64,000 bases of DNA from Eutreptiella sp. 'Long Island Sound 2002' (taxonomy: Eukaryota > Protista > Euglenida): positions 49,600,001-49,664,000 of the forward strand of contig OZ038379.1 of NCBI GenBank assembly GCA_964036045.1. Direction: 5' to 3'. Below, piece by piece: positions 7,362-54,800 of this stretch (positions are counted from its first letter, which is position 1; each line of letters starts with the position of its first letter). Both the position numbers and the translations under genes were made by a program. Below the pieces are notes generated by a model. It did not search any database. It had not been told where the DNA came from and saw nothing but the letters and a program-made list of their open reading frames with translations.

Positions 7362-8821
7362 TCAATTGTTGCCACAGCTTGCGTGCATATTGTTGCATTC
7401 CCAAATAGTGTAGGCATTGTCCACAACCACTTGCACCCCTAGGGTCCCCCGGAGGAGGCTTGGGCTGCCACTGTTGCGCAACATGCGCTTCAGCCTCCAA
7501 TAACTCCCCTCCATGGCAAAGCACGAGAACTTTGACAAGATTCTCCACTTCTTTGCAAATAAATACATGTGGTCGATCCAAAGATGCGTCCACATAAGTT
7601 TGCCACACTGGAGCTCATTGGGGGCAGTGCCCATGGCTATGCTATGTCTCCGGAGCCGCCCCAAGTCGGCCCCAGAGAACCATGCGGAACGCCAAGCGAA
7701 CACACACATGTTTGCAAAATTCTCCCACCACGTGTTGCACACCGACTCCCAACCTCCCCCTACTACTTGATGCTGCCTCACACTGGGGTGTTGTAGGCAA
7801 GCATCAATTACCTTTTCCCATCCCCTGTTGCGCATGAAATGGATGGCAACAGCACACTCCATCCTTACCTTCCCCTTGTTGTTTGCCCTCTCATTATTTA
7901 CTTAGGCATGGGTGAAAGTTTTTGCAGCAAGCCGTGCCTCATCTAAAATTGGTTACGACACGGTGCGTGCCACAGTGGCCGGTGCCTTACCTGTCAATTG
8001 TACAACTAGGTCCCGTGTCCCGTTGATGCCGCACAATAGGACACGGAGGACCCGTGGAGGCCATAATCAGCTCGCCTATCCCCCGTAATGGTCCTATATA
8101 TGGAACCTTTGGCAGCAGCCCCAATCCGGTCCGCGTCTATTGCACTTGTCGTGCCAAAGGCAGCAAGGCAAAAAGCACGGTTTTGCATGCAGACCTAGCA
8201 TAGCGTGGCTCCGGGAGATTTTGCCTTCCAGTTTTGGCAGCCCGCCATGAGCACGTGCGCGTTCCCGTCTGCAAACAAAAAAAAGGACTGCCTATCATTC
8301 CCTCCCGTATCCTTAAAACTTACGGTTGCGGCCTTGCGCAACTCATAATCAAAATTTATTTCTTGGGAGGCCGCGTAGAGGGTCTCCCATTTTTCACTGC
8401 CCCTTAGTAGCCACCAACTAGATAGTTGGTTGGGGCTGGCGGTCCCACCCAGCGCGCAATGCACATACGAGGCTTCGTGCCTCGATGTACCATCCACTGC
8501 AACATGCAACCGATGTAGCTGTCGGGCCCCGGGCTGCATGATGTCCGAAGGTGGGGGTGGTCGACACTTGTACCGGTGCCCGATGCGGTCAGGGAGGTAG
8601 CAGGCCGCACCATGGATGGCCGTGTCGTCTCCCGTATAGGCGGTGAACGCCTCGAACTCTGGTGAAGCTAGCTTCCGAAGCATGTTGTACACCTTTTCCC
8701 ATACCACACCGAACGTCATGCTCCCCACCAGGTACCGCGCCTCTGTCCTGGAAAGGTGCAACAACCAGATCCGCCAAACGGCCATAATCAACCTCTCCTC
8801 CATGCTGGGCTCAGGTTGCAC
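7362..8821 (-). pseudogene. Decayed RAG1/Transib-like DDE transposase
   Basis: Frameshifted pieces in catalytic order: AYTGDDTAIH (D2-like), GCMLQ (xxLH-like), AWRS, then THLWIDHMYLFAKKWRILSKFSCFAMEGS (H-x4-H...E spacing as in RAG1 HKTLAH...GNESG). Confidence 0.65.
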
Positions 8822-18297: not shown

Positions 18298-19899
18298 AGA
18301 TCACCACAACTACTGTGGACACACTTGCCCTTGTGCATACCCTACTTCACAACAGCCACCAGCAGTTTCCCTAGTCCCACCCCAAATACACATCCCCCCT
18401 GGAGGTATGCATTTTGTAGTAGTGCCCCCCCCCCCCCACGGGCGAAGCCCTCCCACGGGTGAACACCCCCCCCCAAACACCCTCCGGCCGAACCCCCCCC
18501 CCCAAAACCCTCCAGCCCCCCCCCTACATCCTCTAGCCGAACCCCCCCCCCCAATTGCCCACCAGCCCCCTCCCCCCGCACGTTTTAGCAGATCCTTTGG
18601 GGGGGGGGATTGTCGCATCAGGACCGGTTGTAGTCGCCCCCGCCCCCCGTGGGTAAGCTTCCCTCAGCTCAACCTTCCAAACACTAAGGCCAGGACCTGC
18701 ATATGGCCATCCATCTTCTGAAAGACACTGGGCACCTCCAACACCCGTGCATGCAAGGTGGTGGTGGTGGGGGGTGGGTGTGCAGGATTTGCACCTGCAC
18801 TAGTATGGGCTGGAGCTTGCCTTGGACCCCCCCCCCCCCGCACTATTGCCCACCGTGCTATCGTGGGGGGGGTGGGGTGAAAACGGGCACGGGTGTCCAC
18901 TCTTGGAACACCCATGGTTTTCGAGGCCCGGACAGTCGCGAGGGCCAGGGCGTCACTCCGCTAATTTACGTGCTCTGGAGGTCTAAACTCCTTCTGTGGT
19001 TGCATTGTCACGGAGTGCCCTAGCCCTCACGATGGTTGCACGGCGCCCCTATGTTTGCGTGCTACGTCCTTTTGTCTCGTGTCCACATGCTCCCATTTTC
19101 CCGTACCTTGTACACGTACTCGCACATGTTTGTCAACAACGTCCCCTAAACTTTTCCGAAATCTAAGCAGTCTTTGTACCATCCCAAGCACCGAATTCAA
19201 GACTTAACGTCTTGGCATTCGGAAAAGCATGTCTGTGTACTGGGAGTGTACCATGTGTCCGCCGCTCTACATGTAGAAAACCAACGCTGCCACGAAACTC
19301 GCACCCTTGACAATGTCTAGTTGTGCTCTAGTATGGTATACCCAGCTAGGCAACGTTGGACCGTGGTGCCACAGCACAAGACAAACCATCGATGGCACTC
19401 AAGTAGATCCCGGGCTGCACCCGGGGTGGGCAGGTCGATAATGTAGTAGGCCGCTTGTTGGCGTAGGACAAACATGGGCCGCCTAGGCTTTTCTAGCAAA
19501 ATTGTGTTGTGGTGCCACCAATAGACGGTGTCCCTTGTTGCAGCGTGGTGAATGCGTTGCTTTGGATCATATGCTGACGCCCTCGTGAGGTAATGCCAAA
19601 GATGCAGATGCAGTGCATGCGGTACCCTGGTAGCCTTAGGCTCGGCTACTTTCCAGCTCCTGCACGCAAGAGGTGATTGGTCGGGTATAAAGATTGATAC
19701 GCACAGGATCCGCTACCTGACAGGAACCGGTCCCCATAGTCATGAAGTTGCAGGGGTTGAGAGGCACAAGACAACTGTAGTATAGTCTTCCAAAAGCTGA
19801 AAAAATTTGTGCCACCTTGTGTGGAGGTTGCCCCATGACGGACGAGAGCTCGCTGTGATGGAGTGAGAACATGGCCAGTCACTGACAGGGTGACCCAAG

Positions 19900-48029: not shown

Positions 48030-49975
48030 CAAAGCCCGAGGTGCGGCACAGGACGACAGGGTAGCCATCGTCGGGCGACTAGCTGGCCATGCGGGAGGCG
48101 TCTCGGGGGTCGGCGCCGAGAGCACACACCACCCAAGCCATGGAGATCCCGGGCGGCACGAGAGGTGGCAGTGGGATGCAGGGAGCGGCGCCTGTGCTGA
48201 GCTGCCAGGAGTGGCACCACCGGAGGAGCCACCCCAAGACGACACTGTCCGAGAGGCTGAGGGTAGTCGACTCGTCGTGTACGTGTACGGGGGAGGGGAC
48301 CGGGGCTTGCGAGGCGACCCGGAGGGAGGGCGCCTCGGAGAGGGCGAGCCGAAGGGGGGGAGACGTGGGCGCCAGCGCCTCATGGCGAGCTGTAGCGACC
48401 TCCGCTTGTTGCGCTGCGAGTAGCAGCGGGCGTTTGGGGTTTGGGTTGGCGACCTTCACTGTGCCGGTAAGGTTGAGGACGAGCTGGTGGGGGGTCGCGC
48501 GCGCCCAGGGGGGACGGGGGATGGCGAGGACGTCCCACGTGAGGCCGACGAGCTGCGTGGGGGTGACGGCGAATGTCCCGAGGTTTATGGGGAACACCAA
48601 GGGGTGGCGGAGCAACTGGCATGCCGCGGACAGGTAGTGCAGGAAGAACACGGGGCAGACACGGAGGAGGTGGACGGAGATGTCGGTGTGGGCGAGGTGG
48701 CAGTAGAGGCAGAGGACCCTGCCGTAGCCAGGGGGATGACGCTGGACTGAGAGCAGGCGGTGCAGCATGATGATGCGCACTGCTTGGGGGGAGGATGGTG
48801 CCTGAGTCCAAGGCTGGGATGAGATGGGCGGAGGACCAAGCCCGGTGTTGTGGGGGGTAGTGCTGAGCGAACTCCTCTTCCCGGTGAAGGAGGGTGACCG
48901 GCTCTGCTAACCAGTGGTGCAGCAAAACAAGGCGTCAGTGATGGGTGGCGAGGCAGCGGCCCGCGAAGCGGTGAACCCATGGGGCTGTAGACTTTCGGGT
49001 AACAACCGCGCCAAGCTCAGCCAAGTATTCGGCTTCAACGTTAAGCCGGGCCAGGAGGGAGACGTCACCCGTATCGTGCTGAGGTGGAAGCCAGGCTTCC
49101 ATGATGCGTGCACGCAAGTGGACGATTGCCGCGCGGAACGGGACCGTTAGGTAGGAGCTGCTGGGTGGGGGCCTGGTAAGGTCAGCCATCAGAGCGACCG
49201 TGGAATCAATGGCCAGCAAAACGTCGCCCGCCCAGTCACCAAGGGCAAAGAGCACGGCGATCTTGGCGAGCCACTCTGCATCCGTGGAGCTGCCGGAGCA
49301 GGCGTGCATCCCGAACCAGAGACGGTAAAAGATGCCCATCTCGGGGTGCTAGAGGACAACTACTGCGCCGAGGCGATGTCGTGTTTGGCTGCCATCAGTG
49401 GCAACCACCACGTACTGCAGGGACCAGAGAAAAGTGATGTCCACTGAGGTGTAGTACTCGCCGTCGTGGAGGGGGGGGCCGGGACACGTGTGCAGGACGA
49501 TGCCAAGAGGGAGCAGCAGGTCGCGCAAGCGCCAGCCTTGGGGCTGCCAACATGCCCTCGGCGGGAGGGACAGGAGGTAGTGGGTGGCCACCACTGCAAG
49601 GAAGTTGGTGCCCCACAAAGCCCCGAGGTACGAGGAGCTGGAGCTGAGCGCGGAGGTCTAGTCAAGGGCACCGAAACCAACAGCTGCCAGAGGCAGGCGG
49701 AGCGGCGAGCGATGGACCCACGGGGGCGGGCGGAAGGCCGCCAAGTAGACGCTGTCGGTCACGCGCTGGTGTGGGCGGAGGTCTACTAGCGAAAACAGGA
49801 CCCCGCTGGCTGCGTAGTCCAGCATAGCAAGCCTAGACGCATGCAGGGAGCGGAGGAGTAGTGCGGGGCCGGCCGGGCTGCGCTTAGTGGCCTTGTGAAC
49901 TTAGCGCAAGGCTCGAAGGGACTTGGTGGCGGAGCGGAGGAGAGGCAGTTCGGGGAGGAGCGGGATGCCTGCCAA
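48030..49975 (-). mobile_element. LINE 3' part: post-RT region, RNase H and C-terminal zinc knuckle
   Basis: LAGIPLLP; VVATDGS...GAVVVL...SSTDAEWLA...AIDSTVAL...WLPPQH (RNase H D-E-D); CLYCHLAHTDISVHLLRVCP (CCHC). Confidence 0.85.
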
Positions 49976-50399
49976 CTCGGGGGGGGGGGGGGGGCTGCAG
50001 AGATGGATATATTCATTTGTCTACCTCGCGCAGAACGGAATCAACTTTTTTGTTCGTCAAAAATGAATCCATAAAGTTTTGTTGTTCCGGGGGGTTTTCG
50101 AACGCGCCGGACGTCGTGGAAGCATCCGTTTTGTTCGTTTCCACCGTTTTTCATGTGAGAAGTGTATCGTTCCGTTGCCTCTACCTTGGCTTTCGTGCGC
50201 CGTGTGCCGGCGTATTACGTGTGTTACGTGTTCTAAGCGTTTGATTCTAGGTGTGCCTCTGGAAACCGAATAACAGGTTTTGCATATCCGTGCAAGGTGT
50301 GTTCCGTGTGCCGCACGTAACGAACACCATGCTTCTGGAGGCCGGAACCCACGTTTTGCGCGAGCTACGCGTCCTCCTGTACCTCAGCCCTTTCTTTAT

Positions 50400-53300
50400 G
50401 CCCACACCCCTTTTCCCGGACAGCCACAAGCAGTAGCTCGCCAAGGGGGGCCACCTGGGGAGTTGGGGGAGCGCAGACACGCTGAAGCACAACGCGTTCA
50501 TCGTGTTCCAGATCAAACACCAGACATGTATGTGATTGTTCAATGGGGTGGAGTACGGGTGTTGTGCTTTTTGATGTCTCCCACGTCCATACCGTTCGTT
50601 TCGCCTTTTTGCTTCTGCTTCCGGGGCCATGCCACACATTTCTTCACAACTGGGTGGCACGCAGCCATGGTGAACCTCAAGAAGGTCGGCAGCAAGGCTC
50701 GCCGAGAGGATGAGATGTTCCTCACCAACGTGACCGCATATCAAGTATCCATGCATGACACGTGCCATGTTGTTTTGTATGGTCGCACCGTGACAGTCCC
50801 CGGTCTCCATTTTCAATAAGCTGCTTACCCCACCAGCTGCCTGCAGAGTAAGACGAAGAAAGGGAAGCCGCGCGATCCCGCGAAAGTCCAAGATTGCCGC
50901 GCTAAGCCTGATGGATGGTTCGAGTACACAAAGGTTGTACTGTGCGTGCTGCGTGTTGCATCTATAAGTGATTGTGCCCCGTGTCATATGCGTGTTGCGC
51001 GTGTTGCGTGTTCTGCGCGGTCTGGTGATGTGCCTCTCGTTCCGCCTCTTGGGGCGCCGCCATCGTGTTACACGTGCTGCGCGTTCTGCAGATCCAAGCA
51101 AACCGTTGTGGACTTGGTTGGAGGGCGAAGAAGAGAGTGAGGAGGAAGAGGAGGAGGAGGCATCAGCGGACGACAGAGACGAAGAGGAGGAAGAGGAGAC
51201 CAAGGAGGAAGACGACGACGAGCCAGCCCATGGCAAGAAGCAAGCCCGAGGCGCACCGAAGAAGGAGCATTCCGAGGACCAGCCAGAGGACCCCGTTGTG
51301 CCGGAGAAACACTCTTCTTCTTCCGCGAAGGCAGCACGGTCCACCATGCTGGAGGTCAAGCAGGAGCCGCAGACAATGGCAGAGAAGAAGAAGCATAAGT
51401 CGGAGGAGCGGAGCCCGCCCAAGGTGCCACCGAAGAATTCCGAGGCGGAGATGCCGAAGAAAAAGCAGGACAAGGACAAGCCGGCCCGTGGGCACGTGTC
51501 CTTTGCGATCGGCGGGAAGGGCCCGCAGAAGAGCATCAACGCCGCACCGACAAGAGCAGAGAAGTTCCGGCATGAAGGCGGGTACGACCGTGATCTGGAC
51601 ACAATGCTGAGAATCTTGGAGACGGACTTCAATGCCACCGTGGGCCGATTGGTGATGCACTACAAGGAGTGCTTGTCGAAGGAACCCAAGTCCAGGCAAG
51701 AGATCGGTTTGGCAGTTCTGCTGCACACCAGTGTCCGGGCCTTGAGCGTGCAAAGCGTGCTGAGATGCGGGACCAAGAACGCCCAGTCGGCTGCAACAGC
51801 CCGTGAGTATTTCGAAAAGCGGTATCCCTCGAGCAGCCCGCGGCAAGTGGCGGAGGGGATTTTGAAGGGCCTTTCAGTTTGTACGGGTTGCGCCGCCGCA
51901 CCGCAATGGCCTGTGGACCTCAGCCCGCCATCAGAGGGTATCAGTCTGGCCAAGCTGAGGATGGAGGGCCTCCGAGGTGGTCGTGGAGGTGGCGGGGCCG
52001 ATCGGGTCAGCACAATCGGCATCGAAGACATTGTTGACATGGAAACGGATGTTTTGCAAGTGTTGCGCGCGTTCTCTGTTGTGTTTCTATATAGTCGTGC
52101 CGCGCGTCATGCGCGTTCCGCGCGTTCTGCGCGTTTGCTTCTAGCCTGCCTCTGGAGGAGAATTCTCGTTTTCCGCGTTCTGCACGAGAACTTCGTCCGG
52201 TTTGTCCGGATGGCCGGCCTGATGGCGTACGAATTGGAAGAGGAACGGAACCTCGAACTGCCGGCGCTTGGAGCATGGTCGCTGGTGCGCACCCGAGAGC
52301 TGGCGGCGAAGAAACCGCGGGTATTTGTGTGCTTTGTGGTCTCGGTGGTGTGCGTGTTGTTGCCTCCGCCGCGCCTCTGGAGGCCCATGGTAGCGTGATG
52401 CGCGTTTTACGCGTGTTGCACGTATGATGCCGTGCACGCTTCTGGAGGAGGATTTTCCGTGTTACGCGTTGTGCAGACTGCCGCTTGGGATTGGGAGCCC
52501 CCTCACATGAGCGGGTACCCGCACCTTCAACCCCTGCCACCGCAGTACCCGCCGCCTCATGCCCACCGTCAACCCCAGCAGTCGTACCACCAAGACCCGC
52601 AGTGGCACCCCTATCCGCCACTGCCCCCCCCCCCCCCCCCCCCCGCCTCCGCCGCATGGCGCGCCGCCGCGGGGCCCCCCGCCTTCCCTGCCCTATGGCG
52701 CGCCCCCCTTCGCAACGGGCGAGCCGCCGGAGCTTCAACCGAAGATGCTGCTCGGCCCGTTCACTGATGTGGCACAGATCAAGAAGGTGCGTGGGCGGCT
52801 GCGGAACCAACCCGATCGTACGTCCTCCGTTGCGGCTTTCAATGCGTGGTTTGTACGGAGCCGTGAGTCACATGTATGTGGGCCCCCGGTCTCGTCTGCC
52901 CAATGTTTTGCAACTCGGTGGCCTCCGTCGTGTTTTCGGAGGATCCGCAGGAGACCGGCGAGACGCGGGACGATGAGCCCCAGAGCATCAGAGCAGAAGG
53001 ACCTAGCGCCGTTGCCATGGAGGAACAGCGGGTCGTTGTGCTGGGTGTTCTCCGCGTGTGCTTCTTTGTCCCTCCAAAGGCCGCTGCGCTCCGTGTTGCG
53101 CGTGTTGCGCGTTCTGCGCGTTCTACATGTCATGCCTCCGCGTTGCCTCTGGAGGAGAGACGTCACGTTGTTCGCATTCTGCAGAAGCTTCCCCCGGAGA
53201 CCAAAGGTGAGGAGGCCAAACAAGGGCCCAAGGAGGCCGCAGAAGGCGCTGCCGAAGGCGCTACCGCGGGTGCGGAGGTCTCAGCAGGGGGCGATGGGGG

Positions 53301-53611
53301 TCCGGCAGGTGAGCAGGTGCGCGTTGTGGTGCCACTACAGTTTGCGCGTCATGCCCGTATGGTTCTGTTGTGCCTCTGGAATCCGCCCCGGCGTGTGTTG
53401 CGCGTTCTGCGCGTGTTACGCGTTACATGTGTCTCGATTCTTGCCCTCCTCTGGAGGACAGCACCCCGTTTTCCGTGTTCTGCAGGCGCCTGTGCGAGTG
53501 AAGGAGGAGCCCCCCGACTCCCCGGAACGCCATGCCGAACCGGAAGGGGCTCCGGATACGGAGACGGCTGCCGAGGGCAAGATGACGGACGGCGACATCA
53601 AAGAATTGTAG
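50400..53611 (+). pseudogene. Multi-exon gene of unknown function (acidic/Lys-rich, Pro-rich) with homologous GT-AG introns
   Basis: Predicted introns 50934-51091, 52051-52188, 52321-52476, 52853-52950, 53032-53184, 53317-53485. Splicing gives KKPR|TAAW, EEQR|KLPP, AGEQ|APVR and removes a stop. A frameshift in the poly-C near 52630 and stops in the 5' part suggest decay. Confidence 0.6.
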
Positions 53612-54030
53612 AGGGCCGGGAGGGCTAGGAGGGGGAGGACGGGTGGGAGGGTGAGGGGTCACAGGGTTTTTTCTCCCCGCTTGGAGAACCGAGTCCAAAA
53701 TGGCCGGACCCCGACGAGTCCCGGGGGCGTCAAAGTTCGCACCTTGCTTTGCGGGTTCCCCCGTGGGAAGTTTCAGCGCAGACAGGCTCTTTTTCGATTG
53801 AACCCCTCCCCCCTCCGCTGCAGATTGCCGTGTGGTAGGGGAATTGAGGCTCAAACCCCCCCCCCCCCCAAGAAAAAAACACCGACACTGCCCTGTGCTA
53901 CGTGTGCTGCGTGTTGCCTCTGAGTGTGCCTCTGGACTGCGTGTGGCGCGTTCTGCGCGTGTTGCGCGTTCTGGGCGTTGCCTCCGGTACTGCCTGTGGA
54001 GTCTGAATGTCCGTGTTCCGTGTTATGCAG

Positions 54031-54800
54031 ACACACCGCTCTTCGAAAATGCCATTTCCCACGAATCTTTATGCGGGTGCACTCACCCTGGAGGATTGTG
54101 CAGCAAATATCATGCATGGAGTCCGGCCAGGCCAAACTGAACTAGTCGGGTACACCGAGGATGAGGTGTGGGACCACATGTTGGCTCCCATCCAGGAATT
54201 GCAGCGGGCATCCCTCCGAAAAGCAAACCTCTCCCACTTGATCCCCCTAGTACCAAGGTGTGTCCCACTTGCTTCTAGCGGTTGGCCCAATGGATTGTAG
54301 TGTTTGCCCCAATCGATTCTAGCGGTGGCTTCCATTTCCGAAGGTACAATGCCTTCATCCTCCTACTAGGCATGGTACAGCCCATCCAAGTAGATGGCAT
54401 CTGGGAACGGGACGGGTTACTATACAACCCCTTCATGGCACGATTGCTAAGCCGCAAGGAGTACTACGTCTTGCGCCGTAACATCCGGCCCGACGTTGTT
54501 GAACTACTGGAGGAGTGCAACGGGCAGTGGGCTGGTGCCTAGCGGTTGGGTGGCGCGGCTTGTGGGGATGAGTCCGTGGTGCCGCACAAAGGCATACGTG
54601 CCGGCCCACTACGGGTGTTCATCGCCCGCAAGCCCCACTCAACCGGCATCAAGCTCTATTGCCTTGCCGATGCCACTAGTGGGTACGTGGTGGACATGTA
54701 CCTGTACACGGGTAGACGTGGCAACGGCGGCGGTTTGGCAACAGTGCGGGCAACTTCAATGCCCAAGAGATCATGACCATGTGGGCAGGTCTCCTCGCTT
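54031..54800 (+). pseudogene. piggyBac transposase (DDE_Tnp_1_7-type), 3'-truncated
   Basis: YNPFMARLLSRKEYYVLRR; ACGDESVVPHKG...FIARKPHSTGIKLYCLADATSGYVVDMYLYTG. In-frame TAG at 54540-42; second and third catalytic Asp absent. Confidence 0.88.

Follow-up and report, generated by a model that had tools for sequence, protein, structure and literature searches.

Do the look-alike introns of one transposon gene in the euglenid Eutreptiella sp. 'Long Island Sound 2002' come from a mobile intron source, or are they kept alike in some other way? The gene, here called the accessory gene, lies in a two-gene, multi-copy piggyBac-like DNA transposon within a 64-kb window of the genome assembly (GCA_964036045.1, contig OZ038379.1, positions 49,600,001 to 49,664,000 of the forward strand; G000:C2:49600001-49664000). 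Coordinates are positions in this window, the annotated features are all on its + strand, and genome-wide searches covered the 2.28-Gb assembly (G000). The window copy belongs to family 1 of the element; a second family (family 2; P0076), found by word search, has 52% protein identity to the window gene and is represented here by copy L073. A first-pass annotation, made from the sequence letters of the window, had described an introner-like set of homologous, phase-0 GT-AG introns at 50934-54030. To judge by sequence comparison, the set appears to be a module private to the transposon and shared by introns and gene leaders, for which there are signs of selection and of one or more intron gains, and the introner interpretation seems only partly right.

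A module shared by introns and leaders

Motif scans of the whole window gave 12 matches of GCGCGTTCTGCGCG (up to 2 mismatches; 0.29 expected), all on the + strand at 51006-53977; 5 matches of GCCTCTGGAGGA (up to 1 mismatch; 0.28 expected), all at 52148-53458; and 8 matches of the 3'-end motif GTTCTGCAG (1.78 expected), 7 of them at 50302-54030. The sole match outside 50302-54030 was a weak 3'-end one at 18966, the rest being on the + strand, and these scans found no modules in the remaining 60 kb of the window or at the element ends.

Membership of noncoding pieces was assessed by all-against-all local alignment, with z scores against shuffles. One sequence family was recovered (z 5-23), made up of five introns (intron 2, 50934-51091; intron 3, 52060-52185; intron 4, 52321-52476; intron 6, 53032-53184; and intron 7, 53317-53485) and the leaders of the two genes (50160-50395 and 53880-54030). 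Scores were 5-18 among the five introns, better than shuffles throughout, and up to 23 for the leader at 53880-54030, which is the hub of the family and the best or near-best partner of most modules. Intron 2 reached z 17.5 to other modules (GT in 11/11 and CAG in 11/11 copies found), intron 4 scored 14.8 to intron 3, and intron 6, present in 34/34 family 1 copies checked, scored 17 to introns 2 and 3. Likeness was independent of orthology, a paralogue often being the top match. Introns 0 and 1 and the intron at 52853-52950 (intron 5) resembled no other piece (z ≤3.4).

The homologous set of the first-pass annotation was thereby borne out, with motifs far above chance, and so was its observation that the same repeat occurs at 50160-50395 and ends at 54030 before the piggyBac exon. 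Of the two introns that it had listed as weaker members, 50934-51091 is a full one; 52853-52950 is not (z <1 to every module) and is probably an ordinary phase-0 intron, found in family 1 only, with GT in 43/46 copies and lengths of 89-99 nucleotides (nt) that are not multiples of 3.

A module is 130-180 nt long and A-poor (6-10% A). It consists of 9-nt GCGCGTTCT-type repeats, one to four TGCCTCTGG motifs, and a GTTCTGCAG 3' end; its sole purine-rich patch follows the last TGCCTCTGG, ~30 nt from the end, and its few A residues are concentrated ~25-35 nt upstream of the AG. The number and order of the short motifs vary between modules, which resemble one another as mosaics of two such motifs and a well-kept 3' end: across all pairs of the five introns, identity is 70-85% in the last 20 nt and just 25-55% in the first 20 nt, which are alike mainly in composition, and the 5' ends are not collinear. 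Every module lies on the sense strand, and its terminal CAG either abuts an exon or stands 10-54 nt ahead of a start codon. Motif sites in the element are likewise on the + strand, with the exception that exon 3 of each family 2 copy, which is acidic, has two TGCCTCTGG sites that are not. The ends of each module cis-intron coincide exactly with GT and AG. Neither inverted termini nor target-site duplications (TSDs) were found at the modules, the sole junction repeat being CAG|G-type microhomology. An Rfam scan of 49800-54400 returned nothing relevant, and folding energies of the module introns were not consistently below those of shuffles (z −2.4 to +2.5).

The leader modules have no GT donor and sit after a conserved putative start region. 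That of the accessory gene (50160-50395) is degenerate, scores z 5-12 to other modules, and has its final CAG 10 nt upstream of the ATG; at this site, family 2 carries a pair of cleaner modules (L073 2221-2348 and 2470-2604), each ending in CTGCAG. That of the transposase gene (53880-54030) has its final CAG 18 nt upstream of the ATG and aligns collinearly with L073 5840-5999 (~73% identity; z 23.5). The in-frame open stretch from its CAG to the ATG is 6 codons in family 1 and 10 codons in family 2.

Evidence that the segments are introns came from family 2, where L073 has an intact seven-exon model with GT-AG introns of 77, 87, 168, 160, 178, and 181 nt. Protein homology between the window and L073 begins and ends exactly at the GT/AG sites for exons 0 to 4, and the frame is kept only with the GT-AG segments taken out. 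In family 1, the share of copies with GT is 84-100% and that with AG ~60-100%, depending on the intron; in family 2, every intron is GT..AG. Among copies, most exon indels have lengths divisible by 3, and intron indels do not. At the first, second, and third codon positions, families 1 and 2 have identities of 0.645/0.718/0.333, which means saturation at third positions and strong purifying selection on the exons. By this comparative evidence, the segments would be spliceosomal GT-AG introns. Precise intron-loss copies of the accessory gene were not seen among ~30 copies, in which the deletions were random.

Phase 0, as first annotated, holds for all five module introns in intact copies, and the canonical GT-AG form within the second gene of a multi-copy piggyBac-like element is supported by the borders in both families. 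The borders first drawn at 52051-52188 move to 52060-52185 by homology (CAG|GTGTTG...CTGCAG|GAG in most other copies), and length divisible by 3, first given as a feature of the set, is not one: the family 2 module introns are 168, 160, 178, and 181 nt long.

Confinement, conservation, and probable gain

Introners are known in Micromonas, Aureococcus, dinoflagellates, and Dothideomycete fungi and have been defined operationally as at least four introns, with similarity reaching both exon-intron boundaries, in genes with dissimilar proteins (Gozashti et al. 2022; PMC9860276). Among the assessable families, TSDs were found in 49/130 and terminal inverted repeats (TIRs) in 72/177, and the published pipeline discards intron pairs from similar proteins (PMC9860276). 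In G000, the intron at 53317-53485 had at least 40 scored copies with 93-98% identity (259 candidates), and at every fetched locus the flanks aligned to window positions 51800-54800, as whole-element copies. A strict module pattern had 183 genome matches and 0 in the control; among the matches listed, all were of three orthologous intron types. A generic pattern (TGCCTCTGG, 10-40 nt gap, GTTCTGCAG) had 482 genome matches and 0 in the control; among the 100 listed, 98 were at known positions in families 1 and 2 and 2 were elsewhere. Since the scored copies are confined to the two-gene element and have neither TIRs nor TSDs, the module is a transposon passenger and not a genome-wide introner. 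To judge by the scored copies and the listed matches, it has not spread to the alga's own genes. The introner-like label, in the sense of an element seeding unrelated genes, is thus not upheld by the 40 scored copies, all within whole-element copies, or by the fixed positions of the generic matches.

Orthologous module introns are 67-73% identical between families 1 and 2 (z 6-10); intron 7, whose orthologue is family 2 intron 5, has 73% identity (z 9.3). The ordinary introns 0 and 1 and the post-stop spacer are unalignable between these families (z ≤2.7). Module similarity across families equals that within a family although neutral sites are saturated, which argues for selection on motif content rather than homogenization. 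The paralogous introns are distinct types, stable across dozens of copies, and ongoing homogenization is unlikely. The idea of one mobile or homogenized source is supported as regards a shared origin or constraint and a probable new intron at 52060, and is not supported as regards independent mobility.

A full hidden Markov model (HMM) search identified four more distant families (families 3-6), as open reading frames (ORFs) on megabase-scale genomic contigs, with more than 100 scored copies each of families 3 and 4 in G000. Examples are the loci G000:C4:86915174-86916112 for family 3 and G000:C6:69011967-69012998 for family 4. The family tree, rooted at its midpoint, was ((F6,(F5,F4)),(F3,(F1,F2))), with support of 86-99%. 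Intron presence was then read at orthologous positions. At 52060, the site is uninterrupted in families 3-6, whose ORFs read straight across without adding or dropping a residue. At the intron 4 site, the ORFs of families 3-5 pass into non-coding-looking text at the same residue, and the position of intron 4 is therefore old. By parsimony under midpoint rooting, with no outgroup, intron 3 (52060) was probably gained on the stem of families 1 and 2. The family 1 introns at 52853 and 53032 have no counterpart in family 2, which has a single 372-nt exon there, and the intron at 53032 was probably gained in family 1. Family 3 ORFs contain an intron within what families 1 and 2 have as exon 3; this intron shows a 9-nt periodicity and an end that fits GTTCTGCAG, and a z of 3.4 is suggestive of a module-type intron. 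Exon ends upstream of module introns are CAG, AAG, or CGG, and intron 3 has TGCAG|G at both junctions, which would fit insertion at proto-splice sites by reverse splicing or microhomology-guided copying.

Explanations weighed

We give somewhat better than an even chance to the explanation that the module is a transposon-private 3' splice-site cassette, kept by selection and now and then seeding new phase-0 introns in the same gene. Because modules end in CAG, lie on the sense strand, and have A residues 25-35 nt before the AG, and because the leaders are donor-less, we infer a portable 3' splice-site cassette with both cis and leader use. The module ahead of each ORF would serve as an acceptor for leader splicing (spliced-leader trans-splicing or a 5' untranslated region intron), and a GT placed in front of the module would yield a complete cis-intron. 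Selection acting on the transposon would maintain the module, and occasional copying of the module to a further CAG|G site within the gene would yield a new phase-0 intron. Such copying would account for the intron at 52060, dating from the common ancestor of families 1 and 2, and probably for that at 53032, which arose in family 1. The route could have been reverse splicing, then reverse transcription and recombination, or microhomology-guided DNA copying, and the transposon would multiply the new introns as passengers.

Several points weigh against this explanation. Within family 1, introns diverge by 6.7% and third codon positions by 7.8%, which are similar rates, and between family 1 subfamilies the selection signal is weak (divergence of 6.4% in exons and 6.7% in introns); with rates so alike within the family, constraint is visible only in the deeper comparison. 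Were the true root on the stem of families 1 and 2, the gain at 52060 would be ambiguous, and the missing family 2 counterpart of 53032 rests on a low-complexity region that is unalignable. Module-type tests of family 3 and 4 introns, made from translated ORF tails, gave z −0.2 to 3.4, mostly not significant. The motifs have no match to the textbook branch-site consensus. No transcript-derived protein or contig of the accessory gene was found, the protein databases holding only genomic ORFs of this gene. A role at the DNA level could also coexist with one in splicing.

Two rivals grant the family relationship and explain it differently. Concerted evolution, in which unrelated older introns were homogenized by gene conversion with neither function nor intron gain, would suit modules whose likeness ignores orthology and whose best match is often a paralogue, and also the old position of intron 4, which nevertheless carries a module in families 1 and 2. 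We consider it unlikely: each intron is a distinct stable type in dozens of copies, introns 0, 1, and 5 of the same gene escaped, the 52060 intron is missing from families 3-6 and not merely altered there, and conversion within lineages cannot explain a cross-family similarity equal to that within families when neutral sites are saturated. The modules might alternatively act at the DNA level as promoters, enhancers, or enhancers of transposition, in the form of arrays to which a host factor, the transposase, or the accessory protein binds, and introns and leaders would simply tolerate them. Short motifs repeated in varying number and order, strongly conserved across families and placed directly upstream of both ORFs, would fit such arrays, as would an accessory protein whose helical domain has no assigned function. 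We rate this, too, as improbable, given the strict single-strand orientation (bar the two TGCCTCTGG sites in exon 3 of each family 2 copy), module ends that are exactly GT and AG in every cis-intron, and the lack of modules close to the ends of the element and in the rest of the window.

The other alternatives concern mobility and intron status. A true introner would be a small non-autonomous mobile element that enters many unrelated genes and is spliced out, the accessory gene being one heavily hit target. It would produce several similar introns at separate positions, each sense-oriented and bounded by a complete GT..AG pair, and it could account for a lineage-specific intron position and for the 2 of 100 sampled generic-pattern matches outside known positions. 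It is very unlikely, since all scored close copies are within whole-transposon copies, the other 98 sampled matches are fixed positions of two families, the other 60 kb of the window has no modules, TIRs and TSDs were not found, and the 5' ends are non-collinear. A bolder version of mobility, which we regard as doubtful, would make the module a self-propagating intron hosted by the transposon: it would reverse splice at CAG|G in the element's transcript, be fixed by reverse transcription and recombination, be carried to hundreds of copies, and form a reservoir for host-gene introners, while phase 0 and the open CAG-to-ATG stretch would make an interchangeable splice network joining accessory exons to the transposase. 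That the segments are translated coding repeats and no introns at all is hardly credible. Long ORFs (50968-52398 and 52559-53611) do cross several segments, and three window segments have lengths in multiples of 3 nt, but A is so scarce that stop codons are rare in any frame. In family 2, translation across the segments that are 160, 178, and 181 nt long would break the frame, and one segment holds an in-frame TAA, which together exclude read-through; moreover, protein conservation restarts exactly past each AG in the spliced frame, and the translated segments are not kept at the protein level.

The splice-site cassette can be set beside known systems. Like introners, the module introns are sequence-similar, complete GT-AG introns at separate positions, with gain evidence for at least one; unlike introners, all members are in one gene lineage on a transposon and not in unrelated host genes, they have no TIRs or TSDs, they share a motif mosaic and a 3' end rather than a collinear element, and their copy number is supplied by the carrier transposon. 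Near-identical introns within single genes of the tunicate Oikopleura were reportedly described by Denoeud et al. 2010, who are said to have attributed their spread to reverse splicing. Those introns are likewise several per gene, with AG|G-like sites and no transposon hallmarks; the modules differ in being common to two families with saturated synonymous sites and still similar, which implies constraint, and in also forming the leaders of two genes. Euglenozoan outrons are the acceptor regions of spliced-leader trans-splicing. The leader modules resemble outrons in being donor-less, lying after a conserved putative start region, and ending in CAG shortly before the start codon, although their use as trans-splice acceptors is putative here. 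We know of no described case of an outron-like segment doubling as the body of several cis-introns. The nonconventional and intermediate introns of euglenids, from the same organism group, are suspected to have originated in mobile DNA (PMC4770533, PMC3935182, PMC11282704). Unlike these, the module introns are canonical GT-AG, with no +4..+6 CAG / −8..−6 CTG pairing and no excess of secondary structure. Neither this element nor introners in Euglena were described in the literature that was searched.

To our knowledge, a recognizable source of a new spliceosomal intron is rare, and none has been established for euglenid conventional introns. The present intron family combines a lineage-specific position, conservation well beyond neutral sites, and a plausible functional core (a portable splice acceptor). 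The gene occurs in hundreds of copies and several diverged families in one genome, which amounts to many natural replicates for testing intron gain, and the conserved module would let the poorly known cis-signals of Euglena splicing be read. Look-alike introns can also be transposon passengers that are not themselves mobile, a trap for introner screens.

Other parts of the element

Exon-by-exon translation and comparison with other copies gave nine exons and eight GT-AG introns for the accessory gene; intron 0 is the sole one not in phase 0, and exon 0 and intron 0 lie upstream of the gene portion first annotated. Just upstream of the first leader module, a noncoding segment (50076-50162) is 76% identical to L073 2129-2215 (z 23 against shuffles), with neighboring spacers not conserved, and may be a promoter or transcript-start region of the gene. 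Exon 0 (50398-50527, 130 nt) has 24/43 residues identical to family 2 exon 0, at equal length; the counts are 18/31 for exon 1 (50650-50744), 14/29 for exon 2 (50847-50933, 87 nt, equal length), and 26/43 for exon 4 (52186-52320), which begins exactly at the acceptor. Exon 3 (51092-52059) encodes an acidic, lysine-rich N-terminal part and then the conserved helical domain, in which 97/184 residues are identical to family 2. Exon 5 (52477-52852) is proline-rich, exon 6 (52951-53031) has an open frame and a 3-nt indel relative to the main subfamily, exon 7 (53185-53316) has an open frame and indels of 12 and 24 nt among copies, and the last exon (53486-53612) is open to its TAG stop. Of the introns that are not module-type, intron 0 (50528-50649, phase 1) is unlike any other, and intron 1 (50745-50846, phase 0, GT..AG) has z ~0 against both its family 2 orthologue and the modules.

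The window copy of the gene is a pseudogene. It has an in-frame TAG in exon 0, AA at the intron 0 acceptor (CACAG in other copies), a 1-nt deletion with frameshift just after 51091, CAA|GT and a destroyed acceptor (CTGCAC) at intron 3, and a frameshift in exon 5 at a C23 run (52622-52645). The run stands in place of 61-74 nt of proline-rich coding sequence in other copies and could be an assembly or sequencing artifact or a genuine replacement; further long homopolymers in the window are G16 (49979-49994) and C14 (53856-53869). A genomic ORF from another assembly (P0098) is an internally deleted family 1 copy in which exon 3 is fused to exon 6 and the frame continues across intron 53032; the fusion stems from deletion and not from splicing.

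The accessory protein has no Pfam family, and its relatives, by word search and full HMM search, were same-species genomic ORFs only. The AlphaFold model of the helical domain has a predicted local distance difference test (pLDDT) score of >90 over ~100 residues, with no fold match (Foldseek best E value, 0.19; VIA best Z, 4.2).

The first coding exon of the piggyBac-like transposase (54049-54257) is followed by an adjoining exon (54342-54787) with 70% nucleotide identity to L073 6242-6688, which falls inside the family 2 ORF L073 6152-7594 (PF13843 DDE_Tnp_1_7; E value, 7.5e-20). ORF fragments of the window transposase have no Pfam match because the window copy is broken. Between the accessory stop and the transposase leader (53795/53798), it is without ~190 nt that nearly all other family 1 copies hold.

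The transposase-gene intron (54258-54343, 86 nt, GT..AG) is not module-type, and its presence varies among copies. It is precisely lacking (CCAAG|GTACA) in 7/34 family 1 copies (L018, L019, L039, L049, L052, L053, and L059) and in family 2 (L073 ~6240). Flanked by an AGGT repeat and containing a ~80% identical 25-nt direct repeat at 44-nt spacing, it has the look of an intron that family 1 acquired recently.

Downstream of the family 2 transposase ORF, L073 has a further module-like patch (~7770-7890; one TGCCTCTGG and two 9-mers, + strand), with none there in the window copy. Directly downstream of the transposase, L073 7901-9789 (minus strand) carries ORFs matching Helitron_like_N (E value, 5e-16) and DUF6570 (E value, 6.6e-18), an adjacency that may be more than chance insertion. 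Flanks of unrelated family 2 copies (L074 170-673 and L075 6190-9980) share satellite-like and other repeats with window positions 27.9-33.9 kb, and the genome is therefore repeat-dense.

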